Below, piece by piece: positions 7,252 to 50,840 of a DNA stretch of 64,000 bases. The stretch's first letter is position 1. Each line of letters begins with the position of its first letter. The DNA lies in the IMG/VR virus record IMGVR_UViG_3300021959_006010, positions 211,367-275,366 of that record; one strand, given 5' to 3'. Under the pieces are notes generated by a model. That model saw only the letters and a program-made list of their open reading frames with translations, was not told the origin of the DNA and did no database searches. Position numbers and translations under genes: made by a program.

Positions 7252-7300
7252 AAGGCTTTAGCCCAAAACAAAAGACCCCGCTGTACGTGTAAATACTAGT

Positions 7301-7507
7301 ATGAAACTACTACTACACAGAGAACTCACATGGCGAGAAGAATGCTTTGTACACGCTCTTACAGGCGGTGACTATGACATCACACCTAGAGTTACTCATG
7401 ACGAAATCTCACAGTACGAAATGCACATACCAAGTGATGCGCTTAATAGTAGAGACACTACACTACTGTTATTAGCACTAAGTGAATGTGTTACACGTGG
7501 CGAGTAG
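7301..7507 (+). CDS. hypothetical protein
   Basis: TAAATA-N5-ATG. Confidence 0.6.
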   Translation: MKLLLHRELTWREECFVHALTGGDYDITPRVTHDEISQYEMHIPSDALNSRDTTLLLLALSECVTRGE

Positions 7508-7823
7508 TAGAGGCCCCGCTGCTAATGCACGTATAAAGGAAGAAAGCTCAAACCAACCTGAGTCTTATAGTAGTAGTATAGCTATAGAGGCAGGTTGAAC
7601 ACTGTGTAGTAACCCGTTGATGTGTATAGAGAATATAGTAGAGAAATATGAAAAAGTATTTGAACTATGCCTCCATCGTCCTCAGCCAACGGTTTAGAAA
7701 TCCTATATAAATTCTTGAAAAAAGTGAAGAAAAACCATGAACTACCACAATAGGCCCCGCTGCTATGCGTGTGTAAGCGGTCTAAGACGCCATTTTACCA
7801 GGATGGGACTGATTCTGCCCAAA

Positions 7824-8032
7824 GATCAATGACTTATATAGAGAACCTCAACCAGCCCCGCAGGGGCCCCTACACTACTACTACGCATAGACTCTACTAC
7901 TACACTACTAACACTATAGATATCAATGACTTAGACTACTACACTACTATAGTAGTTCAACACTACACTATAAGTCATTGATATTACTACACTACTATAC
8001 ACTACACTACTACTATACAAATCAATCGCTTA
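7824..8032. promoter_or_regulatory. cluster of IHF-consensus sites in a low-complexity (ACT/ACTAC)n tract
   Basis: WATCAANNNNTTR matches at 7921, 7971 (minus), 8020 and a 1-mismatch copy at 7824. Confidence 0.55.
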
Positions 8033-8148
8033 GTGTAGGGTGTTCAAGTTCTGGCGTCTTTTGGTTTCTTTTAAAAAAATGGTTGACAGGTTGTGGTTTT
8101 GATCATATACTATAAAGACAGTTAGGGTAACACACAGAGGGAAATCAC

Positions 8149-8433
8149 ATGTTGAAATATCAGAATCTTGCACAGGTAGGCGACCGTATCAGAGCGTATG
8201 ACTTCCGCGGTGGTCGTGACTACTACATAGAAGGGGTCGTTACTGCCAAAGGTCGTATTGAAACTCCTCGAGGGGTGTTGATGTATACAGGCTACACCGT
8301 TGACATAGATGTGGACACAATGCCTGGTGCTGGCCGTGTGGGAGATGTTGGTTATGTGCCGTTTGAAACAAGCTTGGACTACGATGAGAGAATTGAACTG
8401 GTGGACACGGAGTTTGCATACTGGGGCAGCTGA
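8149..8433 (+). CDS. early hypothetical protein
   Basis: own promoter, GAGGGA leader. Confidence 0.8.
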   Translation: MLKYQNLAQVGDRIRAYDFRGGRDYYIEGVVTAKGRIETPRGVLMYTGYTVDIDVDTMPGAGRVGDVGYVPFETSLDYDERIELVDTEFAYWGS

Positions 8434-8530
8434 TGAAAAGAACACGCGAACACGAGAACAAAAAAACGGTTGACAGGCGTGTGTGTTGAGGCTATACTGT
8501 GTGTATAGTTAAAAACATAGAGGGCACACT

Positions 8531-8698
8531 ATGCAAACGAACACAAACGAATGGACAACACAGCAGAAGCGCAGGTTAGCGGATGCAGTATTTGAAGCAA
8601 TTGCACTAGCAGAAGCACTGCGTTTAGACTACAGGGTGGATGCTGTAGCAGAATTTGCAGAGGACTTGTATGCTGCTGTAGAAGAAGACGCAGTATAA
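8531..8698 (+). CDS. early hypothetical protein (55 aa, not in ORF track)
   Basis: promoter 8470, GAGGGC 8520, MQTNTNEW... Confidence 0.75.
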   Translation: MQTNTNEWTTQQKRRLADAVFEAIALAEALRLDYRVDAVAEFAEDLYAAVEEDAV

Positions 8699-8782
8699 AA
8701 AGTTTAAAAAAACACTTGACAGTGTGCGTGTACTGTGTTATAGTATACGCATACTAAACATTGCAACAAAAGTGAGGGCTTT

Positions 8783-9232
8783 ATGCAAACAATTAACTAC
8801 AGCACTACAGTAGCGGACTACTACGAGCACTTAACAAATGAGTGTGCGGATGAGACACGTTTTACTATGGATGAACAGTGCTTTGTGCTTGAGTTTTTAG
8901 CAGACACACTAAACGCACTTACACAGCTAAACAGTGAAACACTACGTGAGGAGGGCAACTTTGCACGTATGCAAGACTGTGCGGAAGTAGCGGACAACTA
9001 CGTAATGCTATTAAACAAGTGCAACAGTGAGTATGATGGCGAGGACTGCTATACGTTTACGCTAGAAGATGCGGGTGCTGCTATTTGCAGTTATGACACA
9101 GAGTACAGGGAGTGCATATGCGAGCAGTTTGAAGATGCGCTAAACGAGTACTTTGCACTTGTACAGCAAAACAAACTGCAAAAACTTGACATTGCAAACT
9201 GTTTAGCATGGCGTGTGTTTAACAGTTACTAG
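8783..9232 (+). CDS. early acidic hypothetical protein
   Basis: promoter 8716, GAGGGC 8774; no Pro. Confidence 0.8.
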   Translation: MQTINYSTTVADYYEHLTNECADETRFTMDEQCFVLEFLADTLNALTQLNSETLREEGNFARMQDCAEVADNYVMLLNKCNSEYDGEDCYTFTLEDAGAAICSYDTEYRECICEQFEDALNEYFALVQQNKLQKLDIANCLAWRVFNSY

Positions 9233-9306
9233 AAACAAAACACTTGACAAGTACTGTAGCACATGCTATAGTACTTGTACACATTAAATGCATTAGAGGG
9301 CAAACT

Positions 9307-9519
9307 ATGCAAGTACACATACTACAACTACAAGGCACTGGCGACGACGAGTACGCATGGGAAAACGCAAGCGTTTTTGCAAGCTGGGAAGAAGCACAGG
9401 AACGTGCTGCGCAAATGAGCAAAGAAGACATAGCGGAGTACGGCGAAGCGTTTTGGATAATGGGCGAGAACATGCGCATTGAAACGCACGACTTAGTAGA
9501 CAACAACTGGGGCTACTAA
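9307..9519 (+). CDS. early acidic hypothetical protein
   Basis: promoter 9244, GAGGGC 9296; start MQVH. Confidence 0.8.
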   Translation: MQVHILQLQGTGDDEYAWENASVFASWEEAQERAAQMSKEDIAEYGEAFWIMGENMRIETHDLVDNNWGY

Positions 9520-9643
9520 TACGCAGGCCCCGCTGCTATAAGGGCTGCTATACTACAGTATAGGCAAACTATACACAGTTGCACTTGCATTTTGGTGCAA
9601 CTGTGTTATATTGTTAGCATAACGCATATAGGAGGGCAAACAT

Positions 9644-9958
9644 ATGCAAGCAACTGTAATTAAAACACTAGACAGTGCAGTGCGTGTAACACTAGTAGAA
9701 GATGACGCGGAGTGGCGTGCAGAGTTTGAAGAATACGGATACGACACAGACATGTGGGCTGCATACGGAGACGGAGATGTGTGGCGAGACAACGTACAAG
9801 TTACGCATACACTAAACGATGAAGAGTACGGCTTTATTTGCGGCAATAGTAGTGACAGACGTGTGTACGGCTTTACAGTAGATGTACACAGAGCAGAAGA
9901 AGCAGATGGCAACTTTAGCTTTTGGGTAACAGAAGAACAATACGAACAAATAGGATAA
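9644..9958 (+). CDS. early acidic hypothetical protein
   Basis: GAGGGC 9632; no Pro. Confidence 0.8.
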   Translation: MQATVIKTLDSAVRVTLVEDDAEWRAEFEEYGYDTDMWAAYGDGDVWRDNVQVTHTLNDEEYGFICGNSSDRRVYGFTVDVHRAEEADGNFSFWVTEEQYEQIG

Positions 9959-10029
9959 AAAGAGGTTGACAACGTGTGTATGCTATGCTATAGTGTACAC
10001 ACACTAACACAGCATAGAGAGGGCTTTTT

Positions 10030-10299
10030 ATGCAAAACACAAATACAAAAACTGCACGTAGTATTGTACGCAACATCCTAAAGCAAAACAATGTTATGTA
10101 TTCCTCGCAAAGTTATACCGACAAATGTGCTAATCCTGCATTACGTAACTTGTGCTTCCTAACAAAAAACTTAACGCCTGCAGTTGTGCAACAAATTTCC
10201 TCTGCGCTTAACGTTACAAAAGTGCATGCAACAAAGCCTATGTTTTACAATGTGCATCCGGATGCACGTTATTTGCGCATAGTGCATTGCGCAAAATAA
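10030..10299 (+). CDS. early basic hypothetical protein
   Basis: promoter 9966, GAGGGC 10019; no Gly/Glu/Trp. Confidence 0.75.
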   Translation: MQNTNTKTARSIVRNILKQNNVMYSSQSYTDKCANPALRNLCFLTKNLTPAVVQQISSALNVTKVHATKPMFYNVHPDARYLRIVHCAK

Positions 10300-10307
10300 A
10301 ACTCAAT

Positions 10308-10349
10308 AAAAACAAGCACTTAGCAGAAAAATTATAAGTGCTTGTTTTT
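10308..10349 (+). terminator. inverted repeat / probable terminator
   Basis: AAAAACAAGCACTTA ... TAAGTGCTTGTTTTT. Confidence 0.55.
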
Positions 10350-10435
10350 AAACAAAACTTTTTGCTTTACAAATGCATAAACTTGTAGTATATTGTTTGT
10401 ATAAGTTAACAAGCATACATGCAGAGGAGCACATT

Positions 10436-10684
10436 ATGCAAAACACAAACTACGTATTTTTAAACGCACAAAACGCTGCAATTGTTGTAACAGTAAACAA
10501 TGTAGTTGTTGCTACAGACGTACAAACAGCAGACGCACTTGTACAAGTGTTTTTAACACACAACATTAATGTGCTTACAGACACTATTATGTGCAGCAGC
10601 AGCATAGATTTTGCTGAAGAGGAGGGCTTTGCTACAGACGCTTGTGCGCATAATATTATAGAGGACGCTTTAGCACAGTTGTAA
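10436..10684 (+). CDS. early hypothetical protein
   Basis: GAGGAG RBS; start MQNTNY. Confidence 0.8.
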   Translation: MQNTNYVFLNAQNAAIVVTVNNVVVATDVQTADALVQVFLTHNINVLTDTIMCSSSIDFAEEEGFATDACAHNIIEDALAQL

Positions 10685-10698
10685 TATACTAAAGTATT

Positions 10699-10732
10699 GC
10701 AAGCACTATACTACGTAGTGCTTGCTTTTTTT
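10699..10732 (+). terminator. rho-independent terminator
   Basis: GCAAGCACTA...TAGTGCTTGC followed by a T run. Confidence 0.7.
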
Positions 10733-10786
10733 GTAACTTGTGTTATATTGTTTGTATAACGTAACAGCAAATGCGAGGGCCGCAAC

Positions 10787-11137
10787 ATGCAAAACAACAT
10801 TAAGCGTAACAGCGTAGTAGTAGTAAACTATAAAAACACACAGCGTTTAGCACTTGTTAAAAGTGTACGTGCTAACAACATGCTAAACGTAACTATGTAT
10901 TTGTTTGCTAATGCAAGCATAGCTAGCGACTACTTAGTGCATGCAAGTACAGTAACGCTAACAAGTGTTAGTGCTAAACAGTTTACGCATTTAGCTAAAA
11001 GCTATCCCAACTATGCGTGTACTAGTGCTAACAGCAAACTATTGTTTAAGCTACAGCAACAAGCAGACGCAGCTTATCCGCAGTATGCAGCACTACGCAA
11101 CAACTATGCAAAGTATACTAGTGCGTTTGCTGCATAG
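10787..11137 (+). CDS. early hypothetical protein
   Basis: GAGGGC 10775; no Gly/Glu/Trp in 116 aa. Confidence 0.75.
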   Translation: MQNNIKRNSVVVVNYKNTQRLALVKSVRANNMLNVTMYLFANASIASDYLVHASTVTLTSVSAKQFTHLAKSYPNYACTSANSKLLFKLQQQADAAYPQYAALRNNYAKYTSAFAA

Positions 11138-11217
11138 TACGCTTAAAAAACACTTGACAACTGTGTGTATGTGTGCTACTATGTACACATACACTAAAGC
11201 ATAACGGAGGGCAGTTT

Positions 11218-11466
11218 ATGCAAAACACACAGTACGAAAACGCAGTTATTGCTGCAATTGAAAATTTTGCAAACAGCATTGCAAATTGTGCGCACGACAG
11301 CGTAGTAGAAAACAACGACTACGCAATTACAGACAGCATAGACAGCATTAACTTTTTGTTTAGCAACTACACAAAATACGACAGTGTACAAGCACTTGCA
11401 AACGCTGCACTAGACAGCACACTAGACACTGTAGTACGTGAAAGCATACATGCACAATTAACGTAA
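11218..11466 (+). CDS. early hypothetical protein
   Basis: promoter 11154, GAGGGC 11207; start MQNTQY. Confidence 0.8.
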   Translation: MQNTQYENAVIAAIENFANSIANCAHDSVVENNDYAITDSIDSINFLFSNYTKYDSVQALANAALDSTLDTVVRESIHAQLT

Positions 11467-11537
11467 AAAAGTAGTTGACAACTGCGTGTACATATGCTAT
11501 AGTGTATGTACACGTTAACAATGTAAGAGGGCATCTT

Positions 11538-11870
11538 ATGTATTACATTTACGAGAACAGCACAACCTACATTATTGGCAAGCCGGACCGCAATGGTGTA
11601 GCCCGTCCGGATCATCGCCAGTCGTATAAGACTATGGCCGCAGCGAAAGCAGCACTCACACGCATCTGCAAGGCAGAAGGCTTGTTGCCAACCGATCCCA
11701 ACTATGCACTGTATCGCTATTCGATTGCAGAGGCCAGCTACTTCCACAGCATGATTGAAAAGAAAGTACTGCGTAAAGTACTAGAAGGCTTTGGTGGCAA
11801 GGAGTATTACGAACCTGTTAACACTCCTGCCTATATGTCACCTGCAAGCGAAACCTACTGGAGCATGTAA
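11538..11870 (+). CDS. early hypothetical phage protein
   Basis: promoter 11475, GAGGGC 11527; C-terminal NTP.Y.SP.SE.YWSM. Confidence 0.8.
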   Translation: MYYIYENSTTYIIGKPDRNGVARPDHRQSYKTMAAAKAALTRICKAEGLLPTDPNYALYRYSIAEASYFHSMIEKKVLRKVLEGFGGKEYYEPVNTPAYMSPASETYWSM

Positions 11871-11998
11871 GATGGATCTACTCCAACGATACCCGAACGC
11901 ACTCGAGCAGCTAGAAATCCTCAAAAAAGATTATTTAGGGGTTGACAATTCTGTAGAGGAGTGCTATATTAGTAGTATAACAAATGGAGGGCAATCCA

Positions 11999-12163
11999 AT
12001 GCAAGTAGACCGCGAAAGACTGGAACGCATCGTCAAGATGGCAGAGAATCTCTACTCTGACGGTGAGTACCGCGATATGGTGTTCGATATACTGCGCACA
12101 GAACCTGAGCGTAGTGACAGCGACATTGCAAATGAATTAGCTATGCGTTGGTACGCTCCGTAA
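11999..12163 (+). CDS. early hypothetical protein (54 aa, not in ORF track)
   Basis: promoter 11942, GAGGGC 11987, MQVDRERLERIV... Confidence 0.75.
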   Translation: MQVDRERLERIVKMAENLYSDGEYRDMVFDILRTEPERSDSDIANELAMRWYAP

Positions 12164-12231
12164 AAAAGAGGTTGACACTGTAGCACTTCGGTGCTATAGT
12201 GTATGTATAAGTTAACAAAGAGGGCTACACA

Positions 12232-12444
12232 ATGACAGATTATTTGTACAACACTGCTTACAAGCTAGGCTGTTACCAAGCTATTGCAGATATGATGCGC
12301 CGCGAGATCCGCAACCTTGACGCTGCACAAGCAGCAGACGACGAGTTTATGGCTGACTGGGCTATGCGCAACCTGCGCTCGCTTGCTACACAGCTTGACG
12401 AAGCAGAAGAAAAAATGAAAAAAGAGGTTGACACTGTAGCATAG
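12232..12444 (+). CDS. early hypothetical protein
   Basis: promoter 12172, GAGGGC 12220. Confidence 0.8.
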   Translation: MTDYLYNTAYKLGCYQAIADMMRREIRNLDAAQAADDEFMADWAMRNLRSLATQLDEAEEKMKKEVDTVA

Positions 12445-12493
12445 TGGTGCTATAGTATATACATAACGTAACAAAAGCAAGAGGGCTTACAAA

Positions 12494-12937
12494 ATGGGTA
12501 CACGTTCAGCAATCGGTTACAAAACACCAGAAGGCAAAGTTCGCGCAAAATACAGCCACTACGATGGCTACCCTGCCTACACTGGCAAGATGCTGCAAGA
12601 GCACTACCAGGAGGCACGTAAGATTGCACAGATGGTAGAGCTAGGCGACCAGTCGTTTATCGCTCCAAACGTATTTCCAACAGACAAGTCGCACAGTTTT
12701 AACACGCCGCAAGAAGATGTGATTGTGTTTTACGGACGCGACAGAGGCGAGTCTAATGTAGACGCAAAAGACTTTGACACTGTGCAGGAGTTTGTAGACT
12801 ACTACGAAGGCGCAGGCTGCGAGTACTTCTACTTGCACACAGCAAACGGTTGGATCGTACACGACCGCTATGGCGTAGGCAACGATGCTAACGGCTATCC
12901 TGTGTTTGACATGCTAGAAAATAAATTGCCTGCATAG
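12494..12937 (+). CDS. conserved-looking phage early protein
   Basis: MGTRSAIG...YSHYDGYP...G..L motif; GAGGGC 12481. Confidence 0.85.
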   Translation: MGTRSAIGYKTPEGKVRAKYSHYDGYPAYTGKMLQEHYQEARKIAQMVELGDQSFIAPNVFPTDKSHSFNTPQEDVIVFYGRDRGESNVDAKDFDTVQEFVDYYEGAGCEYFYLHTANGWIVHDRYGVGNDANGYPVFDMLENKLPA

Positions 12938-13005
12938 GAAAAAAGATGTTGACAGTATGCGCTTTTGAGTGCATACTGTTTATATAAGTTAGCAAAGAGG
13001 GAACA

Positions 13006-13179
13006 ATGAACGAACTGCTAGAAATGATTGAGGACTTGGAAACAATCCAAACACTCACTATGCACCCGGCGCTAGACGAGACTGTTGAGCGCATCCTTGC
13101 AAAATACGAAGAGCGCCGCGAAGCATGGGAAGCAGAGCTTGAGCGCCAATACGAAATGTTCAAAGAGGAACTTGTATAA
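13006..13179 (+). CDS. early acidic hypothetical protein (57 aa, not in ORF track)
   Basis: promoter 12949, GAGGGA leader. Confidence 0.7.
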   Translation: MNELLEMIEDLETIQTLTMHPALDETVERILAKYEERREAWEAELERQYEMFKEELV

Positions 13180-13186
13180 ATGAATA

Positions 13187-13263
13187 GGGCCTTTAGCTCA
13201 ATCGGTTAGAGCACCGGACTCATAATCCGTAGGTTGCGAGTTCGAGTCTCGCAGGGCCCACCA
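13187..13263 (+). tRNA. tRNA with CAT anticodon, probably tRNA-Ile2 (lysidine type)
   Basis: GGGCCT acceptor stem, CT-CAT-AA loop, TTCGAG T-loop, encoded CCA; body resembles bacterial Ile2 tRNAs more than Met. Confidence 0.85.
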
Positions 13264-13268
13264 AGTAA

Positions 13269-13345
13269 CTGCCCTTAGCTCAGCTGGATAGAGCAACAGC
13301 CTTCTAAGCTGTGGGTCGTAGGTTCGAATCCTACAGGGCAGGCCA
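13269..13345 (+). tRNA. tRNA-Arg(TCT)
   Basis: CTGCCCT/AGGGCAG acceptor, ACAGC-CTTCTAA-GCTGT anticodon arm, CCA. Confidence 0.95.
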
Positions 13346-13349
13346 ATTA

Positions 13350-13433
13350 GCCCGCGTGGTGGAATAGGTAGACACAAGGGACTTAAAATCCCTCGCTTAT
13401 GGCGTGCCAGTTCGAGTCTGGCCGCGGGCACCA
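13350..13433 (+). tRNA. tRNA-Leu(TAA)
   Basis: GCCCGCG/CGCGGGC acceptor, AGGGA-CTTAAAA-TCCCT, long variable arm, CCA. Confidence 0.95.
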
Positions 13434-13452
13434 AACAAAGAGGAACAGGACA

Positions 13453-13608
13453 ATGATGTGTCCAGAATGTAACATGTCGAAACCTTGGACAAGCTCACGC
13501 TGTCCTAACTGCAACCAGAGTGTTGGCATTGTGTTCGGACTATGGTGGAACACACTTCGAGTGGTACTGACTCTTGCACTGTTCGTTTTTATTGTAAGTT
13601 TATTTTAA
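13453..13608 (+). CDS. small zinc-ribbon membrane protein
   Basis: CPEC...CPNC followed by a hydrophobic C-terminal helix. Confidence 0.65.
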   Translation: MMCPECNMSKPWTSSRCPNCNQSVGIVFGLWWNTLRVVLTLALFVFIVSLF

Positions 13609-13680
13609 AAAAGTGGTTGACAAAGGCAACAAAGGCTGTATACTGTACACAGTTAGATAGAAAACACAGAGGGCAACTAG

Positions 13681-14679
13681 ATGAATATCACTATCGTAGA
13701 AGGCACATATAAAATTCGAGGCAACGACACTTCAGTAGCAGGTCAAACGTTTCCTCTAGTAGAAGAGTTTAGAATGGGTAAGAATGGCGGGTACGTAACT
13801 GTTGATGGATCAGCAGTAGCAGGCTTCCCGGATCGTAATATCAAGATCAAGGTTGTAAGCGCCGACAGTTACGTACCCGCGGGGGAAGGCCCCGCTGATA
13901 GACAGCGCGAAGAAAGCGATGAAGAGATCATCGAACGAATTCGCACTCGCTTTGACATGCTAAAAGAAATGACCAAGGCTGTCAAGAAGCAAGATGTCAA
14001 AGCAATGATCGTAAGTGGCCCTCCAGGTGTTGGTAAGAGCCACGGCGTAGAAGAAGTACTTGATCGCTATAACACTATGCAGATGTTAGGCGGAGGCAAG
14101 CAGTTCGAAGTTATCAAAGGTGCTATGTCGCCCATTGGTTTGTACTGCAAGCTTTTCAAGATGGCAGACAAAGGTAAGGTTGTAGTGTTTGACGACTGTG
14201 ACTCGATCTTCCAGGACGAGCTAAGCCTTAACATCCTAAAGGCTGCTCTGGATTCAAAGAAAGATCGTTGGATCCACTGGAACACTGATTCGTTCAAGTT
14301 GCGCAACGAAGGTGTGCCAGACAAGTTCAAGTTCGAAGCAAGTGCGATCTTTATCACGAACCTAAAGTTTGACAAAGTCAAAGGTAAGATGCGTGAGCAC
14401 TTGGAAGCACTAGAGTCACGCTGTCACTACATGGACCTTACCATTGACACAGAACGAGACAAGATGCTCAGAATCAAGCAGGTCATTCGTGACGGTATGC
14501 TAGATAGCTATAAGCTGAGTGATGAGATCAAAGAAGAGATTGTAGACTTCTGCGATATTAATAAGAAGCGACTACGTGAATTGTCCCTAAGAACAGTTTT
14601 GAAAGTCGCCGATTTGGCACTTGCCTTTCCAGATCGTTGGGAAGCATTTGCCGAAAATACCGTGATGCGTCGAGCCTAG
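13681..14679 (+). CDS. P-loop (AAA+-like) ATPase
   Basis: Walker A GPPGVGKS, Walker B VVVFDDCD, sensor IFITN, Arg finger ALESR. Confidence 0.85.
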   Translation: MNITIVEGTYKIRGNDTSVAGQTFPLVEEFRMGKNGGYVTVDGSAVAGFPDRNIKIKVVSADSYVPAGEGPADRQREESDEEIIERIRTRFDMLKEMTKAVKKQDVKAMIVSGPPGVGKSHGVEEVLDRYNTMQMLGGGKQFEVIKGAMSPIGLYCKLFKMADKGKVVVFDDCDSIFQDELSLNILKAALDSKKDRWIHWNTDSFKLRNEGVPDKFKFEASAIFITNLKFDKVKGKMREHLEALESRCHYMDLTIDTERDKMLRIKQVIRDGMLDSYKLSDEIKEEIVDFCDINKKRLRELSLRTVLKVADLALAFPDRWEAFAENTVMRRA

Positions 14680-14697
14680 CTCCGCTGATTGGTAGAC

Positions 14698-14846
14698 ACT
14701 GTGAGCGGGTCCGCCCTCAACTTGCTCACAGTACATTGTGGTTGGACCGCCCTCATCCAACTACAGTAGAGTAGACGAACGCCCTCACGCTCTACTCTAA
14801 TAGTGCCCTCGCAGTGTATGCCCTCACACTGCGGGGGCTTTTTTTT
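14698..14846 (+). ncRNA. four-hairpin RNA presenting GCCCUC loops; the last hairpin is also a terminator
   Basis: stems 14698-14732, 14737-14765, 14767-14799, 14805-14838; loops CCGCCCTCA, CCGCCCTCA, AACGCCCTCA, ATGCCCTC; G-U pairs on + strand; T8 tail. Confidence 0.8.
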
Positions 14847-14923
14847 GAAAAAAATGGTTGACAAGCTATAGGTTCGGTGTTATATTATTAGTATAAGTTG
14901 AAACACTGTAAGAGGGCAAACAG

Positions 14924-15118
14924 ATGATTAAGGTACACAACAGAGGTTACGGAACTGGCGAAGCACGTTACATTCCGTTGAGCGAAGTAAACATCCACAC
15001 ACAAAAGATCTGTGAGTTTACAGGCGCTCCGTACATTATCTTCGAGCACAAAGACTATCCGTTGGGTTCTTTGAGTGCTACATTTGATGGCACCTACTGG
15101 GACTGTGATTTAGACTAA
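14924..15118 (+). CDS. early hypothetical protein
   Basis: promoter 14858, GAGGGC 14912. Confidence 0.75.
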   Translation: MIKVHNRGYGTGEARYIPLSEVNIHTQKICEFTGAPYIIFEHKDYPLGSLSATFDGTYWDCDLD

Positions 15119-15129
15119 GGGAGAATACG

Positions 15130-15300
15130 ATGTACGAAGATGAGAACGAAGATTTGATCATTGCTGTACTGGAGCAGATCCGCGAGGATGTCAGCAACGG
15201 AGACCTCACAGCAATCGAACAGTTGATTGAAATGCAGGCACCTTACGCACTGCTGAACTTCCTACCTGAAGAGAAACAGAAACAATTTATGGAAGATTAG
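15130..15300 (+). CDS. early acidic hypothetical protein (56 aa, not in ORF track)
   Basis: AAGGGAGA RBS, MYEDENEDLIIAVLEQI... Confidence 0.7.
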   Translation: MYEDENEDLIIAVLEQIREDVSNGDLTAIEQLIEMQAPYALLNFLPEEKQKQFMED

Positions 15301-15444
15301 GAGACTATTTTCCGGATGCGTCCGTGTAGAGGACCCGGCCGGCTAAAAGCACCATTGTTAGTTTCAGTCAAGCTAGAGCGGCAACGTCAATAAGGCCGTG
15401 CGGTGCGATTGGAGATACTAGGGGCGTATTCGGAAAATAGTTTC
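15301..15444 (+). ncRNA. structured ncRNA of unknown class
   Basis: 23-bp closing stem 15301-15323/15422-15444 with four G-U pairs; internal hairpins, GCAA tetraloop, possible pseudoknot. Confidence 0.7.
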
Positions 15445-15519
15445 AAATTAGGGGTTGACAAATCCCACAGTAGATCATATACTGTATATAACAGTTAGGA
15501 AATAGCAAGAGGGCAAATC

Positions 15520-15828
15520 ATGCAATTCGTAATTACTACACAGTTCCTGGAAAACTACGGCGCACACTGCGAGGACGGTAAGTTCAAGTCCGGCAATGCA
15601 TATTGGAAGATGAAGGGAGGCACAGACTACTGTGTGTCAGGTCTTGATCGCATCCAAGATGCGGTTGCGTTCGTGGCAGCCAAGGAGATGCATAATAGCA
15701 TCGGCGCTAAGGAGTTTCCAGTAGAGTGGAAGACCTATGCAGAGTGGGAGCGTGATCTTCCGGAAGACGAGGACTACAGAGAGTTCTTGCTCGAGCAACT
15801 GAAACACGTAGACCCGAGGGAGGTGTAA
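15520..15828 (+). CDS. early hypothetical phage protein
   Basis: promoter 15455, GAGGGC 15509; TQ..ENYGAH...YWK.KGG motif. Confidence 0.8.
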   Translation: MQFVITTQFLENYGAHCEDGKFKSGNAYWKMKGGTDYCVSGLDRIQDAVAFVAAKEMHNSIGAKEFPVEWKTYAEWERDLPEDEDYREFLLEQLKHVDPREV

Positions 15829-15829
15829 T

Positions 15830-15991
15830 ATGTTTCGTCAATATTTCGTATACTACGATGGTCGGTTCCAAGGAACTGTAATGGCACTTTCAGAACAGAG
15901 TGCGCTGGACAAAGGTTGCCAGATGGTAGGTGTGAGTGCTAGTGCCTACTCGGGTCGAGCACGCCGTTTGGTAGAAGTAATTCGCAAATAG
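15830..15991 (+). CDS. hypothetical protein (53 aa, not in ORF track)
   Basis: GGAGGT RBS. Confidence 0.65.
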   Translation: MFRQYFVYYDGRFQGTVMALSEQSALDKGCQMVGVSASAYSGRARRLVEVIRK

Positions 15992-16056
15992 AGGTTGACA
16001 AACCGTCAATCCTTTGTTATAGTGTATGTATAAGTTAAACAAACGAGGGCAAAGAT

Positions 16057-16284
16057 ATGTTTAATGCACGAGACGAAGCACTAGAATTGGTAGAGAACGG
16101 CGTAGTGTCAGCAGAGTATTTGCTAACAGCCTGCCTCAAGTATATGTCAACAGACGATGTTGCAGACATGCTAGATGCTAACGAACTTTCCGATCGCTTC
16201 CTAGAAGATGACGAGCCAGACGTAGACGAGGCTCAGGAGTGGGAAGACTTTGGCGAAGTTGGTTACGAACCGGAGTATATCTAA
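16057..16284 (+). CDS. early acidic hypothetical protein
   Basis: promoter 15995, GAGGGC 16045. Confidence 0.8.
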   Translation: MFNARDEALELVENGVVSAEYLLTACLKYMSTDDVADMLDANELSDRFLEDDEPDVDEAQEWEDFGEVGYEPEYI

Positions 16285-16445
16285 TGGCAGGAGCAGACAA
16301 CACTCGTCGCATTTACATCACAGTCGCGCTGGAGATACTGCGTGACGCAAACGAACAGGAAGTAATCGCAGAGTGCGATTACACCTTTGAACATCCCGAC
16401 ATTGTCGATACGGAAATTATGGGAGAGGACGAATACTATGCCTAA
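16284..16445 (+). CDS. hypothetical protein
   Basis: TAATG coupling to upstream ORF. Confidence 0.6.
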   Translation: MAGADNTRRIYITVALEILRDANEQEVIAECDYTFEHPDIVDTEIMGEDEYYA

Positions 16446-16989
16446 TTGGTGCAATAACTCATTTTCAATCACCGGCTCTACTGAGTCAATCAAAGAACTG
16501 TGGGACACAGCACAGACTGCCGACAACGGTGAATTCGGCTTGCTCAATGCTATTATGCCAATGCCCAAAGAGCTAGAAGGCACAACGGCTCCTAGCGAAG
16601 GTGGCGACAACTGGTATAACTGGCGAGTAGAGAACTGGGGCACCAAGTGGGAGGTCTCAGACGAAGGACTCGAGTATACGGATCACGGAGATGGCACTGC
16701 ATCAATCGATGGTTGGTTTGACAGTGCATGGGCTCCACCCATTGGTGTGTATGAGCAATTGGCTGCCGACTTTGACTCGTGTGTGATCGAGTGCTCTTAC
16801 TACGAGCCCGGCATGGACTTCGGAGGCTTTTGGTCAAGTGAGAAAGGAGACATCTACTTTGAAAGCCTAGACGATATGCTAAAAGAAGATCCGGACACTT
16901 GGAGCGACGAGTTCCGAGAATTTGAAGCAGAGTATGATCTGCTGTCAGAAGAGTGGCGCTTCGAAGACGAAGAAGTAGAATTAGATTAA
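16438..16989 (+). CDS. DUF1281/YubB-like protein
   Basis: MPNWCNN, WY.WRVENWGTKW, FDSAWAPP, YYEPGMDFGG. Confidence 0.75.
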   Translation: MPNWCNNSFSITGSTESIKELWDTAQTADNGEFGLLNAIMPMPKELEGTTAPSEGGDNWYNWRVENWGTKWEVSDEGLEYTDHGDGTASIDGWFDSAWAPPIGVYEQLAADFDSCVIECSYYEPGMDFGGFWSSEKGDIYFESLDDMLKEDPDTWSDEFREFEAEYDLLSEEWRFEDEEVELD

Positions 16990-17052
16990 AAAAAGAGGTT
17001 GACACAGTGAGCCATTGGTGCTATAGTATAGATAACAGTTAGGAGGGCACCT

Positions 17053-17313
17053 ATGGCTTACTGGACACACACCGTCAAACCAATTGGTTGTTTCGTAGAG
17101 AAAGAGGTAGGCAACTACTTCGAGTATAGCGTCAACGACGATCCACTCACAGGCTTCAACGAAGACTTCCCACACAAGATTTGGGTAGGAGACGGCTACC
17201 GTTATGGAAATGTCAAGAAGACGGTTGCTGTGATCTGTGTAGACGAAGACGAATACGGCTTGCCTGTAGTAGAGAAGTGGTTCTTGAAAAAGAATACAGC
17301 TTATGCAAATTAG
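17053..17313 (+). CDS. early hypothetical protein
   Basis: promoter 16999, GAGGGC 17043. Confidence 0.8.
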   Translation: MAYWTHTVKPIGCFVEKEVGNYFEYSVNDDPLTGFNEDFPHKIWVGDGYRYGNVKKTVAVICVDEDEYGLPVVEKWFLKKNTAYAN

Positions 17314-17379
17314 GGGTTGACAAAACACTAGACTGAGTGCATACTGTATATATAGTTAGAAATTAGGAGGGCTCCTACA

Positions 17380-17595
17380 ATGGCAACAGAATTAAAAAGC
17401 ACAACAGAAGATGTTAGCTTGACACGCTTTTGGGGCGGCGAAGCTCGCGGCACTTGTGTACAGGTTACAACAACCTACACAGCAGATCCAAAAGACTTCT
17501 TTAAGCATATAAGTTTGACACGCGAAGAGGCTGCAAGTGTAGCAGCCGACTTGATGAAGTTTGCACAAGGCACAGAAGAGGAGCACTGGGCATGA
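17380..17595 (+). CDS. early hypothetical protein
   Basis: promoter 17317, GAGGGC 17367. Confidence 0.8.
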   Translation: MATELKSTTEDVSLTRFWGGEARGTCVQVTTTYTADPKDFFKHISLTREEAASVAADLMKFAQGTEEEHWA

Positions 17596-17798
17596 TTAAG
17601 TCACTATTGGTTGGATTGTTTGTAGGCGGCGCATTGTTTGTTCTTGCAGACTATGCGCTTTCGATTCCAGACGTAAAGATGAGCTATGCTACAAACACCT
17701 GCGTAGAAGTTATCAATTATCCTAGTACGCTGTTTGGCACTACCAACTTCAGCTGTGAGTTGATGCCAACAAAATTTAATCACATTTGGGTAAAATAG
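17592..17798 (+). CDS. small membrane-anchored hypothetical protein
   Basis: ATGA coupling; hydrophobic N-terminus. Confidence 0.7.
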   Translation: MIKSLLVGLFVGGALFVLADYALSIPDVKMSYATNTCVEVINYPSTLFGTTNFSCELMPTKFNHIWVK

Positions 17799-17862
17799 GG
17801 GTTGACAAAACCCCTAGCTGGTGGTATACTGTATATAACAGTTAGGAAACGAGGGTTAGAAA

Positions 17863-18213
17863 ATGAAAAAATTCGCAATCAACACAGCAAGCAATCTAAT
17901 GTCAGCAGCCGTAATTGGCGGCGTATTGTTGTTCGCGGCGGCACCAGCACACGCTTGGGGCGAACGTGAGCAAGGCATTCTTACTGGAGTGATTGGCACA
18001 CTGATCATCCAAGACATCAATCGTGGCAACAACGGTCACACCACACACGGTCATCAGCATCCGCAACAGCCTGTAGTCATCCAGCACACCACTCGCAACT
18101 GCGGCGTTGAAGTTCGCACAGTATACACAGACGGTGGCACACGTTCGATTACCGATACTGTTGATGCGTGTACTGGTCGATTGATTCAACGTGTAGAACG
18201 CAAGAGCTGGTAA
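17863..18213 (+). CDS. early secreted/membrane hypothetical protein
   Basis: signal-like AAAPAHA; promoter 17802, GAGGGT leader. Confidence 0.75.
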   Translation: MKKFAINTASNLMSAAVIGGVLLFAAAPAHAWGEREQGILTGVIGTLIIQDINRGNNGHTTHGHQHPQQPVVIQHTTRNCGVEVRTVYTDGGTRSITDTVDACTGRLIQRVERKSW

Positions 18214-18333
18214 TATGTATATAGTCGAAGACAACGACGGTCGTACGATTGCAATATGCAGTCGGCTAGAAGATGCTCGTGCATACACGGCAACCAACCT
18301 TGATAATGTAACCTATACCATAAAGGAAAACAC

Positions 18334-18603
18334 ATGCAATTCTTCGAAGCAACAGAACAGCAACGAAAGCTCGCAGACATCGGCCGACAAATGATGGACT
18401 GGAGCGAGAACTACGGTCGCACCCAAGGCCTACGAGACGTAACGGACAACGGCCTGCGAACACTGAACGAAATGAGTCACGTGGGCAACATGCTCACTCA
18501 CTACGGTGCTCCTTATGGAACTAGTTCCAAAGACTTCTCAGAAGCAGACCGCAAATTAATTGCTCAGTTCCTACAGAAAGAGGTTGACATCGAGCGCAAG
18601 TGA
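18334..18603 (+). CDS. hypothetical protein
   Basis: AAGGA RBS. Confidence 0.7.
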   Translation: MQFFEATEQQRKLADIGRQMMDWSENYGRTQGLRDVTDNGLRTLNEMSHVGNMLTHYGAPYGTSSKDFSEADRKLIAQFLQKEVDIERK

Positions 18604-18645
18604 TGGTATACTGTATATAACAGTTAAGCAATAGAGGGCAAAACT

Positions 18646-18921
18646 ATGCGTAAACTACAGCAATTCGTCGACGATCAGAACGTGTGGAGATCACTCTTCA
18701 ACACTGCAGAGATCACTTTCCCACTAAGCCAAGCACATGTAAACGACTTAGGCAAGAGCATTGACTCAAAGCTTTCGCCAGAAAACCTACATCAAGACGG
18801 AGAGCGCGACTACAAAGAAGCGATCCGCATTGGCAACTACCTTAACGATGTACTGGACGAGCTGAATGCATACTGCAAACAGAACAGTCTAGTAGAACCA
18901 ACTGTATGGGAGGCATGGTAA
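18646..18921 (+). CDS. early hypothetical protein
   Basis: promoter 18584, GAGGGC 18634; LSPENLH.DGE motif. Confidence 0.8.
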   Translation: MRKLQQFVDDQNVWRSLFNTAEITFPLSQAHVNDLGKSIDSKLSPENLHQDGERDYKEAIRIGNYLNDVLDELNAYCKQNSLVEPTVWEAW

Positions 18922-19166
18922 TGAACCTAGCACAAACATTCTTCCAGGCTGTTAACAAACCTGAGAACTGGTACAAAGAAGACGGCATGAGCCGCATCAA
19001 TTGGAACTTCGTAGACGCTGACTGCTACATGGCATGCGGCAGAGAGTATCCAACAACAGATGCATTCTACGACGAGTGGAACGCATTGTGCGACATCTAT
19101 GTTGCAAGCTATAACAGCCACAGTCTACAAATGAACCAAATACTGGTTGACACAGTACCGGCTTGA
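18921..19166 (+). CDS. hypothetical protein
   Basis: TAATG coupling, GGAGG RBS; INWNFVDAD motif. Confidence 0.7.
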   Translation: MNLAQTFFQAVNKPENWYKEDGMSRINWNFVDADCYMACGREYPTTDAFYDEWNALCDIYVASYNSHSLQMNQILVDTVPA

Positions 19167-19211
19167 AGCTATACTGTAAGAGTAAGTTAAACAAAGCAAG
19201 AGGGCATTGCA

Positions 19212-19556
19212 ATGAACTACACTGTAAACGAAATCCAAAACATCCTAGCAGAAGCAACTGAAGCAGCCTACACTGCCGCGGACGCATTTGAACAGGAATA
19301 CTTTCCGGACAACGGCTGGGGAGCATGTGGCTTTGCTTGGGTAGACATATTCGGCATTAAAGGCAACACCAAGCTGGGCCGTGCGCTTAAGGCAGCAGGC
19401 ATTACTAAGAGCTACAACGGCGCACACCAAATATGGAACCCGTCAAAGTATCCTACACAGAATGTAGACACACTAGAAGCAGGTGCACGAGCGGCAGCAG
19501 ATGTGTTCCGCAAGTATGGCTTTGACAAAACATACGCAGGCAGTCGACTAGACTAA
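19212..19556 (+). CDS. early hypothetical phage protein
   Basis: promoter 19147, GAGGGC 19200; CGFAWV...SRLD. Confidence 0.8.
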   Translation: MNYTVNEIQNILAEATEAAYTAADAFEQEYFPDNGWGACGFAWVDIFGIKGNTKLGRALKAAGITKSYNGAHQIWNPSKYPTQNVDTLEAGARAAADVFRKYGFDKTYAGSRLD

Positions 19557-19580
19557 TACGATCAAACAGTAGAGAGACTA

Positions 19581-19613
19581 GGGGCAAGTTCTAACGCTTG
19601 CCTTTTTTCTTTT
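19581..19613 (+). terminator. terminator ending the early island
   Basis: GGCAAG...CTTGCC plus T run. Confidence 0.7.
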
Positions 19614-50057: not shown

Positions 50058-50840
50058 TTAACCTATTAGGAATCCGTAGCCTGTACCGCCTGCTACTGCC
50101 ATTGAAACATCTTGCTCAAGTTTTTCCATTTCAGATTGTGCTTCAGCTTTTAACGTGTCGCCATTTAAACTAGTACCACCTTGAGGGCCTGCAATAGTAG
50201 CAAACTTTGAACGTGCTTCGCCTAGCATATATTTACAACTTGCAAGTGTATAATCTTTAATCCACTGGCTTGCAAGATAATCATCAAGTAACTGCAATGT
50301 AGGACGATAGTTATAAGCAAAAATTAAAATTTCTTCGTCGCCTCGAGGTCTTTGCAAAATTGTTAATTTTTTGTTAGTGTTGTTCCAGGTAAATTCCATA
50401 AAGCTACCAAACATACGTCCTACAAGTTCTTGATATCCTGCAAACATATCATATGTTGCTAATCCGCCCATTTGTGTAGATCCTGCTAAAAGGTATGTAT
50501 TAGTAAATGCTAAATTGAATGGTTCAAAAAGAGATCCGCCACCGCCGTTGCCAGTACGAGATCCAATTGATCTTCTGTATAATTTTCTTACTTCGATAAC
50601 TTCGTTTGGAAGTATATATTCGTTTTGATCTTCTATCATAGATAAAAACAAATAACTTTCTTCAACAGAGTGATCTGATCTCTGTCGATATTTTGAAAGT
50701 GCTTTGTTAAGTGCAGTTTCGTAATGTACAGGGTCAAGTTCGACATCTATCATGCCGCCGCCTAGAAATGCATTAACATAATCATAGACTTCTTGTTTCT
50801 TAGTTATTAGCTGTTGTTTTTGTAGTTCAATATCTGACAT
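50058..50840 (-). CDS. neck protein (gp13-like)
   Basis: LG...IDVEL, W.KDY.LA..K..LG.ARSKF....GP.GG..LNG. Confidence 0.8.
   Translation of the reverse strand: MSDIELQKQQLITKKQEVYDYVNAFLGGGMIDVELDPVHYETALNKALSKYRQRSDHSVEESYLFLSMIEDQNEYILPNEVIEVRKLYRRSIGSRTGNGGGGSLFEPFNLAFTNTYLLAGSTQMGGLATYDMFAGYQELVGRMFGSFMEFTWNNTNKKLTILQRPRGDEEILIFAYNYRPTLQLLDDYLASQWIKDYTLASCKYMLGEARSKFATIAGPQGGTSLNGDTLKAEAQSEMEKLEQDVSMAVAGGTGYGFLIG

Follow-up and report, generated by a model that had tools for sequence, protein, structure and literature searches.

Why should almost every early promoter in this uncultured marine jumbo phage be followed by a ribosome-binding site spelled GAGGGC, when the GC at the end of that motif cannot pair with a canonical anti-SD? 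We addressed this question in a 64,000-nt stretch (hereafter the window; positions 211,367 to 275,366 of the 275-kb contig IMGVR_UViG_3300021959_006010), which is the only part of the contig that could be checked. GAGGGC occurs 28 times in the window against 10.2 +/- 3.2 expected, with 20 copies in the largest shuffle. Twenty-one copies are on the + strand between 8520 and 19205, and one is at 50183, whereas six are on the - strand, at 14018 and five at 14713-14825. An earlier note had listed 19 of these copies as leaders, and we confirmed that all 19 have an ATG 3-7 nt after the motif that opens an ORF of 54-332 aa and is the first start after a sigma-70-type early promoter. The four variant sites that it described are likewise correct, but it missed two intragenic copies (8951 and 10622) that have no start codon at ribosome-binding-site distance. 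The early units, all on the + strand, are as follows.

8083..8151 (+), early unit 1: -35 TTGACA at 8083, -10 TATACT at 8106-8111, tag GAGGGA at 8137-8142, ATG at 8149 (94 aa)
8470..8533 (+), early unit 2: TTGACA at 8470, TATACT at 8493-8498, tag GAGGGC at 8520-8525, ATG at 8531 (55 aa)
8716..8785 (+), early unit 3: TTGACA at 8716, TATAGT at 8739-8744, tag GAGGGC at 8774-8779, ATG at 8783 (149 aa)
9244..9309 (+), early unit 4: TTGACA at 9244, TATAGT at 9267-9272, tag GAGGGC at 9296-9301, ATG at 9307 (70 aa)
9585..9646 (+), early unit 5: weaker -35 TTGCAT at 9585, extended -10 TGT-TATATT at 9604-9612 (overlapping terminator hairpin 9573-9606), tag GAGGGC at 9632-9637, ATG at 9644 (104 aa)
9966..10032 (+), early unit 6: TTGACA at 9966, TATAGT at 9989-9994, tag GAGGGC at 10019-10024, ATG at 10030 (89 aa)
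10366..10438 (+), early unit 7: TTTACA at 10366, TATATT at 10389-10394, canonical GAGGAG at 10424-10429 (the only untagged promoter-proximal leader), ATG at 10436 (82 aa)
10722..10789 (+), early unit 8: weaker -35 TTGCTT at 10722, extended -10 TGT-TATATT at 10741-10749 (just after terminator 10699-10725), tag GAGGGC at 10775-10780, ATG at 10787 (116 aa)
11154..11220 (+), early unit 9: TTGACA at 11154, TACTAT at 11177-11182, tag GAGGGC at 11207-11212, ATG at 11218 (82 aa)
11475..11540 (+), early unit 10: TTGACA at 11475, TATAGT at 11498-11503, tag GAGGGC at 11527-11532, ATG at 11538 (110 aa)
11942..12001 (+), early unit 11: TTGACA at 11942, TATATT at 11965-11970, tag GAGGGC at 11987-11992, ATG at 11999 (54 aa)
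12172..12234 (+), early unit 12: TTGACA at 12172, TATAGT at 12195-12200, tag GAGGGC at 12220-12225, ATG at 12232 (70 aa)
12428..12496 (+), early unit 13: TTGACA at 12428, TATAGT at 12451-12456, tag GAGGGC at 12481-12486, ATG at 12494 (147 aa)
12949..13008 (+), early unit 14: TTGACA at 12949, CATACT at 12972-12977, tag GAGGGA at 12997-13002, ATG at 13006 (57 aa)
13617..14679 (+), early unit 15: TTGACA at 13617, TATACT at 13639-13644, tag GAGGGC at 13669-13674, ATG at 13681, AAA-type ATPase of 332 aa (T4 NrdC.10-like, PHROG 1250) with its stop at 14679; the carrier gene of the predicted RNA described below
14858..14926 (+), early unit 16: TTGACA at 14858, TATATT at 14881-14886, tag GAGGGC at 14912-14917, ATG at 14924 (64 aa)
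15455..15522 (+), early unit 17: TTGACA at 15455, TATACT at 15478-15483, tag GAGGGC at 15509-15514, ATG at 15520 (102 aa)
15995..16059 (+), early unit 18: TTGACA at 15995, TATAGT at 16018-16023, tag GAGGGC at 16045-16050, ATG at 16057 (75 aa)
16999..17055 (+), early unit 19: TTGACA at 16999, TATAGT at 17022-17027, tag GAGGGC at 17043-17048, ATG at 17053 (86 aa)
17317..17382 (+), early unit 20: TTGACA at 17317, CATACT at 17340-17345, tag GAGGGC at 17367-17372, ATG at 17380 (71 aa)
17802..17865 (+), early unit 21: TTGACA at 17802, TATACT at 17825-17830, tag GAGGGT at 17851-17856, ATG at 17863 (116 aa)
18584..18648 (+), early unit 22: TTGACA at 18584, TATACT at 18607-18612, tag GAGGGC at 18634-18639, ATG at 18646 (91 aa)
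19147..19214 (+), early unit 23: TTGACA at 19147, TATACT at 19170-19175, tag GAGGGC at 19200-19205, ATG at 19212 (114 aa); the early region ends at terminator 19580-19605

Each of the 23 tagged starts follows a promoter-like site, of which twenty are TTGACA-N16/17-(T/C)AnnnT, one has TTTACA (10366) and two have weaker -35 boxes with an extended -10 (9585, 10722). The tag is placed relative to the ATG (5.4 +/- 1.0 nt) and not relative to the -10 box (22.5 +/- 3.5 nt). By contrast, none of the 9 promoter-distal early genes, which start between 8 nt of overlap and an 11-nt gap from the upstream stop, has GAGGGC (19/23 against 0/9, Fisher p = 2.5e-5; against 0/46 with late genes included, p = 1.9e-13). 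Late genes in the window use AGGAG, AGGAGGT or TAAGGA, or nothing, and GAGGGC is absent from the sense strand of the late region (0 observed against 5.2 expected). The AGGAGGT-type sites argue that the host anti-SD is canonical.

The earlier note had proposed that the fixed GC is an address tag, read either by the hairpin RNA at 14698 or by a phage protein. To explore the first possibility, we examined the 168 nt between the stop of the ATPase gene and a strong terminator, which fold into four hairpins whose loops carry GCCCUC, the exact complement of the tag.

14680..14847 (+), predicted non-coding RNA (3' UTR of the ATPase transcript) with five GCCCUC copies at 14713, 14749, 14781, 14805 and 14820; no Rfam family
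14698..14732 (+), hairpin 1, the one singled out in the note: 13-bp stem, loop CCGCCCUCA at 14711-14719
14735..14767 (+), hairpin 2: 12-bp stem, loop CCGCCCUCA at 14747-14755
14768..14798 (+), hairpin 3: loop AACGCCCUCA at 14778-14787
14805..14847 (+), hairpin 4, an intrinsic terminator: 13-bp stem (9 G-C pairs), loop AUGCCCUC at 14818-14825, T8 tail at 14839-14846, with a further GCCCUC copy (14805-14810) forming the 5' arm of the stem

Five GCCCTC copies in 168 nt compare with 0.013 expected (Poisson 3.5e-12), and across 16 loci of the clade of relatives that we term clade A the density is 8.4 per kb in the 300 nt after the ATPase stop, against 0.087 per kb elsewhere. Of 43 GCCCU(C/U) copies, 32 sit in hairpin loops. 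Promoter-proximal leaders match a loop over 5-8 contiguous nt (mean 6.8), compared to 4.8 for distal genes and 4.4 for late genes, although four of the 23 leaders in the window deviate and their best match to any loop is only 5 nt. The hairpins are real RNA structures with covarying stems and invariant loops, although that the RNA is made and accumulates remains our inference. For the terminator hairpin in 15 relatives, 80% of cells are paired against 52.7% in shuffles (0 of 500 reach it), eleven of 12 pairs change on both sides, the covariation score is 0.69 against 0.24, and the UGCCCU loop is invariant.

We next asked whether tag and loop change together in relatives from IMG/VR. Clade A pairs GAGGGCA leaders with UGCCCUC loops. 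Clade B pairs GGAGCGAA leaders with an invariant AUUCGCUCC loop and has an invariant CCGAUUCGCUCCCGG core on variable outer stems, and clade C pairs GGAGUGAGAA leaders with UUCUCACU and UCUCACUC loops. Clades without a tag lack the loops. The cross-clade complementarity matrix is diagonal, with values of 2.21, 1.59 and 3.13 on the diagonal against 0.36-0.79 off it, and on the ATPase tree tag and loop states agree, with 23 + 12 + 9 matched loci and 15 with neither, albeit with only three independent tag/anti-tag types and with states shared among relatives by descent. In 112 loci fetched by the clade B loop core alone, GGAGCG-N3-10-ATG occurs 577 times on the RNA's strand and 4 times on the opposite strand. 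Interestingly, one relative (L011) has lost GAGG, its leaders reading AAGGGCA, but keeps AGGGCA:UGCCCU. Together, these data support the RNA option of the earlier note. No evidence for a protein reader was found, but one is not excluded.

Based on these findings, we consider it probable, with moderate confidence, that GAGGGC(A) is a ribosome-binding site with two jobs, its GAGG core pairing with a canonical 16S anti-SD and the full GAGGGCA serving as a class-specific address that pairs with the (U)GCCCUC loops of a phage-encoded structured RNA. That RNA (14680-14847) is the terminator-proximal 3' end of the early ATPase transcript as well as the end point of read-through from the promoters upstream of it, and it displays four anti-tag loops plus a fifth copy inside the terminator stem. 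We propose that as this stable RNA accumulates it occupies the ribosome-binding site of the first gene of each early transcript, including its own, where it would out-compete the 30S subunit (about -14 against -6 kcal/mol by duplex energies) even though the pairing is short (6-8 nt). Early translation would then be shut off or capped and the tightly coupled downstream genes would follow, which would be an RNA counterpart of T4 RegB/RegA early shut-off. Repression and pairing in cells are inferred in the absence of expression or interaction data: only DNA metagenome runs hold the sequence, and the one RNA run covered only the conserved ATPase part of relatives. Moreover, the RNA is transcribed together with its targets, such that a delay has to come from stability or read-through dosage, which we assume.

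The direction of the effect is the point on which the proposal is most open to an alternative, since all the complementarity and covariation evidence fits equally well with a pairing that activates or protects, in which the RNA shields early leaders from a nuclease or stabilizes or localizes early mRNAs, and an RNA made at the same time as its targets suits a helper as well as a repressor. We nonetheless consider this unlikely because the pairing covers the ribosome-binding-site core itself, which in studied sRNAs blocks 30S binding (PMC4132741, PMC2790875), and the leaders are short and A-rich with no inhibitory structure for the RNA to open. A mainly cis-acting interaction, in which the 3' UTR loops fold back on the tagged 5' leader of the ATPase mRNA to autoregulate that gene and the tags elsewhere are by-products, seems less likely still. 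The ATPase gene's own leader is tagged in all three clades, and in clade C only 1-2 promoter-proximal leaders per locus, the ATPase leader among them, carry the full tag. However, in clades A and B most promoter-proximal leaders are tagged (113 of 155 in clade A, and 494 of 987 promoter-like sites in clade B loci), and copy-and-drift alone would not keep these invariant.

We hold similar doubts about a phage or host protein reader, such as a RegB-like nuclease or a RegA-like repressor, to which the complementary RNA is unrelated or whose access it only modulates. T4 uses exactly this logic, as RegB cuts GGAG in early ribosome-binding sites (PMC3014915), and most early ORFs here have no known function, yet a protein reader does not predict that an RNA's loops carry the exact complement or that they switch together with the tag in three clades, and no RNA-binding or nuclease domain was found in the 10 largest early ORFs. 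It is also possible, though disfavored, that GAGGGC is simply the ribosome-binding site of an ancestral promoter-leader-start module that spread by duplication and that the GC has no function, given that the whole module is stereotyped (TTGACA, TATAnT, AGTTA, an A-rich spacer, the tag, and often ATGCAA). Flanking leader positions carry 0.2-0.5 bit, but AGGGC is by construction the anchor of that 123-leader alignment and its invariance there shows nothing. The independent evidence is that its neighbors are conserved (G 0.85 before it, A 0.82 after it) and that the 113 of 155 promoter-proximal leaders noted above carry AGGGC in phages whose ATPases are only 65-80% identical, and a frozen cassette cannot explain the anti-tag loops or the linked switches. 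Finally, the location of the motif in a fixed zone downstream of the promoters and the dense cluster of sites at 14713-14825 could suggest a DNA-level operator, with the cluster acting as a sink or strong operator. This appears very improbable, as the sites are strictly strand-specific and positioned relative to the ATG and not the promoter, and the cluster copies sit in loops of hairpins whose stems covary, which is an RNA-level constraint.

No Rfam family or paper describing this RNA was found. The nearest cultured relative, the Pseudomonas jumbo phage PA5oct (Arenbergviridae), is likewise a jumbo myovirus that depends on host RNA polymerase for early genes (PMC7318152), with a large terminase subunit that is 54% identical and an ATPase that is 49% identical, but it has no gap after the ATPase gene and neither the tag nor anti-tag hairpins in the homologous region. 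The architecture of CsrB/RsmZ-type sponge RNAs is alike in that a string of hairpins each presents the same short loop motif, but those loops carry GGA and copy the mRNA site in order to titrate the CsrA protein, whereas here the loops are the complement of the mRNA site and lack GGA. The P1/P7 c4 antisense RNA (Citron and Schuster 1990) appears comparable as a phage-encoded structured RNA, cut from an operon transcript, whose loops pair with short complementary sites that cover a ribosome-binding site on phage mRNA. It seems to control one operon (icd-ant) for immunity, while here about 20 transcription units carry the site, and there is no match to the Rfam C4 model. As with the T4 RegB endoribonuclease and its GGAG sites and the RegA repressor (PMC3014915), a motif inside the ribosome-binding sites of early mRNAs would here mark that temporal class for coordinated post-transcriptional shut-off and the regulator's own mRNA would also be a target, except that the predicted reader here is an RNA and not a protein, the motif differs, and no RegB/RegA-like domain was found among the early ORFs examined. 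Lastly, in the C-rich-loop sRNAs Listeria LhrC, S. aureus Rsa RNAs (UCCC motif), M. tuberculosis 6C and Xanthomonas sX13 (PMC4132741, PMC2790875, PMC6486639, PMC3771888), several stem-loops, including the terminator loop, display the same C-rich motif, which is complementary to G-rich ribosome-binding regions of multiple mRNAs, and the seeds are short. There is no sequence or Rfam relationship to these sRNAs, and the RNA described here is phage-encoded, sits in the 3' UTR of an early operon, and has as its predicted targets the phage's own early class, marked by an extended private tag and not the generic ribosome-binding site, with tag and anti-tag co-diversifying between clades.

To place the tagged early region in its genomic context, we first examined the coding content of the last 64 kb of the IMG/VR contig IMGVR_UViG_3300021959_006010 (275,366 bp), which belongs to an uncultured jumbo myovirus. 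This sequence encodes a T4-type large terminase subunit, a 1093-aa tail sheath, a gp15-like sheath stabiliser, DnaB-type and other helicases, and a carbamoyltransferase, and it occurs in DNA runs from marine and estuary metagenomes. The nearest cultured relatives are the Pseudomonas PA5oct group, to which the terminase and the ATPase are 54% and 49% identical, respectively, although the homologous region of PA5oct has no tag and no hairpin array. No close genome was present in a collection of 50,697 phage records, in which only tRNA hits appeared.

We next asked whether GAGGGC marks the first gene after each early promoter, as proposed in an earlier note made from the sequence alone. GAGGGC occurs 28 times against 10.2 +/- 3.2 expected, and 21 of these copies are on the + strand between 8520 and 19205. 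Nineteen of the 21 lie 3-7 nt before an ATG that opens an ORF of 54-332 aa, and the other two are intragenic. The early region in which they fall, and the elements within and around it, are as follows.

7300-8025: dense direct and inverted repeats of the ACTACTACACTACTA type and TAAGTCATTGATAT palindromes just upstream of the early promoter array, which could be a boundary or an origin-like region
7511, 7752 and 9525: three copies of AGGCCCCGCTGCTA(T/A), two of them in the non-coding stretch upstream of the first early promoter
8083-19556: array of 23 promoter-leader-start units
8951 and 10622 (+): the two intragenic GAGGGC copies
9573-9606, 10699-10725, 14805-14838 and 19580-19605 (+): the only four + strand terminators in 11.5 kb that holds 23 promoters
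13187-13433: tRNA-Met, tRNA-Arg and tRNA-Leu cluster
14713-14825 (+): five copies of GCCCTC
15300-15445 (+): intergenic element of about 145 nt between ORF 15130-15300 and the promoter at 15455, closed by a long terminal helix, with a minimum free energy of -58.1 kcal/mol (z = -4.3 against shuffles) and no Rfam match; it may be a second non-coding RNA of the early region

Twenty of the 23 units have TTGACA-N16/17-(T/C)AnnnT promoters, one has TTTACA, and two have weaker -35 boxes with an extended -10. The first gene of every unit has a GAGG-based ribosome-binding site, of which 19 are GAGGGC, 2 are GAGGGA, 1 is GAGGGT and 1 is GAGGAG, and the coordinates and classes in the earlier note are therefore correct. 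The tag keeps its distance to the ATG (5.4 +/- 1.0 nt) far better than its distance to the -10 box (22.5 +/- 3.5 nt), so it is a translation-level signal. None of nine promoter-distal early genes, which start between 8 nt of overlap and an 11-nt gap from the upstream stop, carries it (p = 2.5e-5), and within the window the tag is confined to early promoter-proximal leaders. By contrast, late genes use AGGAG, AGGAGGT or TAAGGA, or nothing, which argues that the host anti-SD is canonical. GAGGGC is also absent from the sense strand of the late region (0 observed against 5.2 expected, P = 0.006), a weak hint that late mRNAs avoid the tag. Interestingly, the stereotyped module extends into the first codons, as many early ORFs (among those at 8531-11999, 15520 and 18334) begin ATGCAA(A/G), and ORF 8783-9232 contains an in-frame internal GAGGGC-N12-ATGCAAG (8951-8971) that looks like two small genes fused. 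A conserved (A)AGTTA(A/G) element of unknown role lies about 7-12 nt after the -10 box, near the predicted transcription start of most early leaders between 8100 and 19200, and is shared by all three clades of relatives described below whatever their tag.

As a ribosome-binding site, the tag has the expected properties of a Shine-Dalgarno element but is not fully explained as one. Its GAGG ends 5-9 nt before the ATG and would pair with CCUC of an E. coli-type 16S tail at -6.3 kcal/mol, assuming that the host tail is of this canonical type, as inferred from the late-gene sites of the AGGAGGT type only. Positions 5-7 of the tag (G, C and A), however, do not pair with the canonical tail, yet 113 of 155 promoter-proximal leaders in clade A, the closest group of relatives, carry AGGGC, and in the alignment anchored on AGGGC the base that follows it is A in 82% of leaders. 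Moreover, within clade A, the locus L011 has replaced GAGGGC with AAGGGCA, thereby keeping GGGCA while losing GAGG, and its loops stay UGCCCU. The conserved core is therefore the pairing AGGGCA:UGCCCU and not the anti-SD match.

The earlier note had also suggested that the fixed GC of the tag is an address for a hairpin RNA or for a phage protein. Five of the six minus-strand copies of the motif are the GCCCTC copies on the + strand within 14713-14825, which fall in the 168 nt between the stop of a 332-aa AAA-type ATPase gene (T4 NrdC.10-like) and a strong intrinsic terminator, where the expected count is 0.013 (Poisson 3.5e-12). This stretch folds at -70.6 kcal/mol into four hairpins with loops CCGCCCUCA, CCGCCCUCA, AACGCCCUCA and AUGCCCUC. 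The last hairpin is the terminator, which has a 13-bp stem followed by T8 and is conserved in relatives, and a fifth copy of the motif forms the 5' arm of its stem. No separate promoter precedes the stretch, so it is the 3' UTR of the ATPase transcript. Because no + strand terminator was found between 10725 and 14805, we infer that read-through from up to eight promoters also ends there, with the tRNA cluster and the sRNA lying at the end of this read-through unit. With respect to expression, no RNA run was listed for 12400-16400, and the one RNA run found covers only the conserved ATPase part of relatives, at 90-95% identity.

To assess complementarity between the leaders and this predicted RNA, we first computed duplexes between the whole RNA and the leaders, but this approach ignores intramolecular structure and gives unrealistically long duplexes, and we replaced it with loop-only contiguous matches and short-duplex energies. 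Promoter-proximal leaders match a loop over 5-8 contiguous Watson-Crick nt (mean 6.8), and in 22 of 23 the match runs through the tag, whereas distal genes average 4.8 and late genes 4.4. A leader-loop duplex is worth about -14 kcal/mol, against -6.3 kcal/mol for the leader with a canonical 16S tail.

We next used the ATPase gene as an anchor to fetch 85 related IMG/VR loci. All loci with 65% or more ATPase identity (clade A) keep both the tagged leaders and 1-5 GCCCU(C/U) copies right after the ATPase stop, where the density of GCCCTC is 8.4 per kb against 0.087 per kb elsewhere. Of 43 copies, 32 sit in hairpin loops, and most of the rest form a single-stranded UAA(C)UGCCCUCA at the stop codon. 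In 15 relatives the terminator hairpin has an invariant UGCCCU loop, and 11 of its 12 stem pairs change on both sides. In that hairpin 80% of cells are paired against 52.7% in shuffles (0 of 500 reach it), and the covariation score is 0.69, against 0.24 for shuffles and 0.30 or less for slid controls. These data indicate that this is a real RNA structure and that selection acts on the loop sequence.

More distant relatives allowed us to examine whether tag and anti-tag change together. Clade B, whose ATPases are 52-60% identical, has the same one-promoter-per-gene layout, but its leaders read aGGAGCGAA, and at the syntenic terminator, usually one ORF further downstream, sits an invariant CCGAUUCGCUCCCGG. 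Alignment of the clade B RNAs with MAFFT followed by RNAalifold recovered only the 3-bp inner stem because indels misalign the outer stem, and we therefore turned to anchored and per-sequence folding. In 23 of 25 distinct units the element folds as a 9-nt AUUCGCUCC loop on variable outer stems, and each left arm forms 6.96 of 8 possible pairs with its own right arm, against 5.92 +/- 0.15 when the arms are shuffled among units. In three clade B loci, a second copy of the CCGAUUCGCUCCCGG hairpin plus terminator lies 7-9 kb downstream of the first (L020 at 19169, L023 at 18059 and L039 at 20280). In these same loci the ORF directly after the ATPase gene, between it and the sRNA, encodes a protein with a Cys/Trp-rich motif (CQW.GP...YC..HY) that, by eye, recalls the C-terminal domain of GcrA-like regulators. 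Clade C, whose ATPases are 49-52% identical, has GGAGUGAGAA leaders, including the ATPase's own, and directly after the ATPase gene come loops containing UUCUCACU and UCUCACUC. Neither clade B nor clade C has a cultured member.

In line with linked change, the complementarity matrix between RNA regions and leader sets is diagonal, and on an ATPase tree the tag and loop states agree, with 23, 12 and 9 matched loci and 15 with neither; four apparent exceptions are artefacts of our simple classifier. As an independent test, we searched IMG/VR for the clade B loop core alone, which returned at least 120 stretches. The 112 new loci carry GGAGCG-N3-10-ATG 577 times on the RNA's strand and 4 times on the other, and 494 of 987 promoter-like sites are followed by it. 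One clade A phage (L015, 590-8900) mixes GAGGGC-tagged leaders with clade-B-like AAGGAGC leaders and may be an intermediate or a recombinant between tag types. By contrast, a sister clade (loci L041, L045, L053, L057, L064, L066, L067 and L072) has 2-3 tandem AGGCAAA repeats in the ATPase leader in place of a ribosome-binding-site tag. No antisense cluster was found there, and the TTGCCT pairs that we did find lie in coding sequence, so this is a different and unexplained leader device.

Collectively, this comparative evidence supports the RNA-address interpretation, and the best-supported reading is direct RNA-RNA pairing between the loops and the ribosome-binding region of the first gene of each early transcript. 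We propose that the outcome is repression, as pairing covers the ribosome-binding-site core, is predicted to be stronger than 16S binding, and would spread to the translationally coupled distal genes. The stable, terminator-ended, multivalent RNA would accumulate relative to short-lived mRNAs and give early translation a pulse shape. That the RNA is expressed, that it pairs in cells and that the effect is negative are all inferences, and both activation or protection and a mainly cis 5'-3' interaction on the ATPase mRNA remain possible. A protein reader, a frozen promoter cassette and a DNA operator, on the other hand, each fail to explain the linked switches of complementary motifs, or the placement of the anti-tag in the loops of covarying hairpins. 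No informative domain for a protein reader turned up among the 10 largest early ORFs, and the ATPase has no PDB relative by sequence.

A more far-reaching possibility, which we put forward only tentatively, is that a large, wholly uncultured family of aquatic jumbo phages runs a private, co-evolving RNA code in which an extension of the ribosome-binding site marks a whole temporal gene class and a multivalent phage RNA reads that mark to time or cap early translation. Under this scenario the tag/anti-tag pair has been re-coded at least three times while keeping a duplex strength of about -12 to -14 kcal/mol, and the re-coding may keep co-infecting relatives or host countermeasures from cross-talking. 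If so, this would be the first RNA-based, regulon-wide early shut-off system in a lytic phage. The three natural tag/anti-tag pairs have similar strength and no predicted cross-talk, so they are ready-made orthogonal parts for translation control.

The system is common in environmental jumbo phages, yet it is absent from Rfam and from the papers we searched. Searches of Rfam at both gathering and E-value thresholds gave no match for the clade A, B or C RNAs, the only hit being a sub-threshold NsiR1 match (26.5 bits against a gathering score of 39), and we found no hit to the C4 RNA family. Temporal shut-off of early genes in lytic phages is understood mainly through proteins such as T4 RegB, RegA and Alc, and an RNA that addresses a whole gene class through a dedicated extension of the ribosome-binding site would be a new solution to that problem. 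In its proposed action the RNA would work like the C-rich-loop sRNAs that occlude ribosome-binding sites, namely LhrC, the Rsa RNAs, 6C and sX13, with which it shares a structured RNA exposing the motif in hairpin loops, an intrinsic terminator with a U-tail at the 3' end, and complementarity to the translation initiation regions of several mRNAs, but not homology. In logic it resembles the P1 c4 RNA and T4 RegB, which marks early mRNAs by GGAG in their ribosome-binding sites (PMC3014915), although no RegB/RegA-like domain was found among the 10 largest early ORFs, and it is not a member of any of these RNA families. Finally, whereas the loops of the CsrB/RsmZ protein-sponge RNAs carry the GGA CsrA-binding motif, identical to the site on the mRNA, the loops here read CCGCCCUCA or AUGCCCUC, which is the complement of the mRNA site and not a copy of it.
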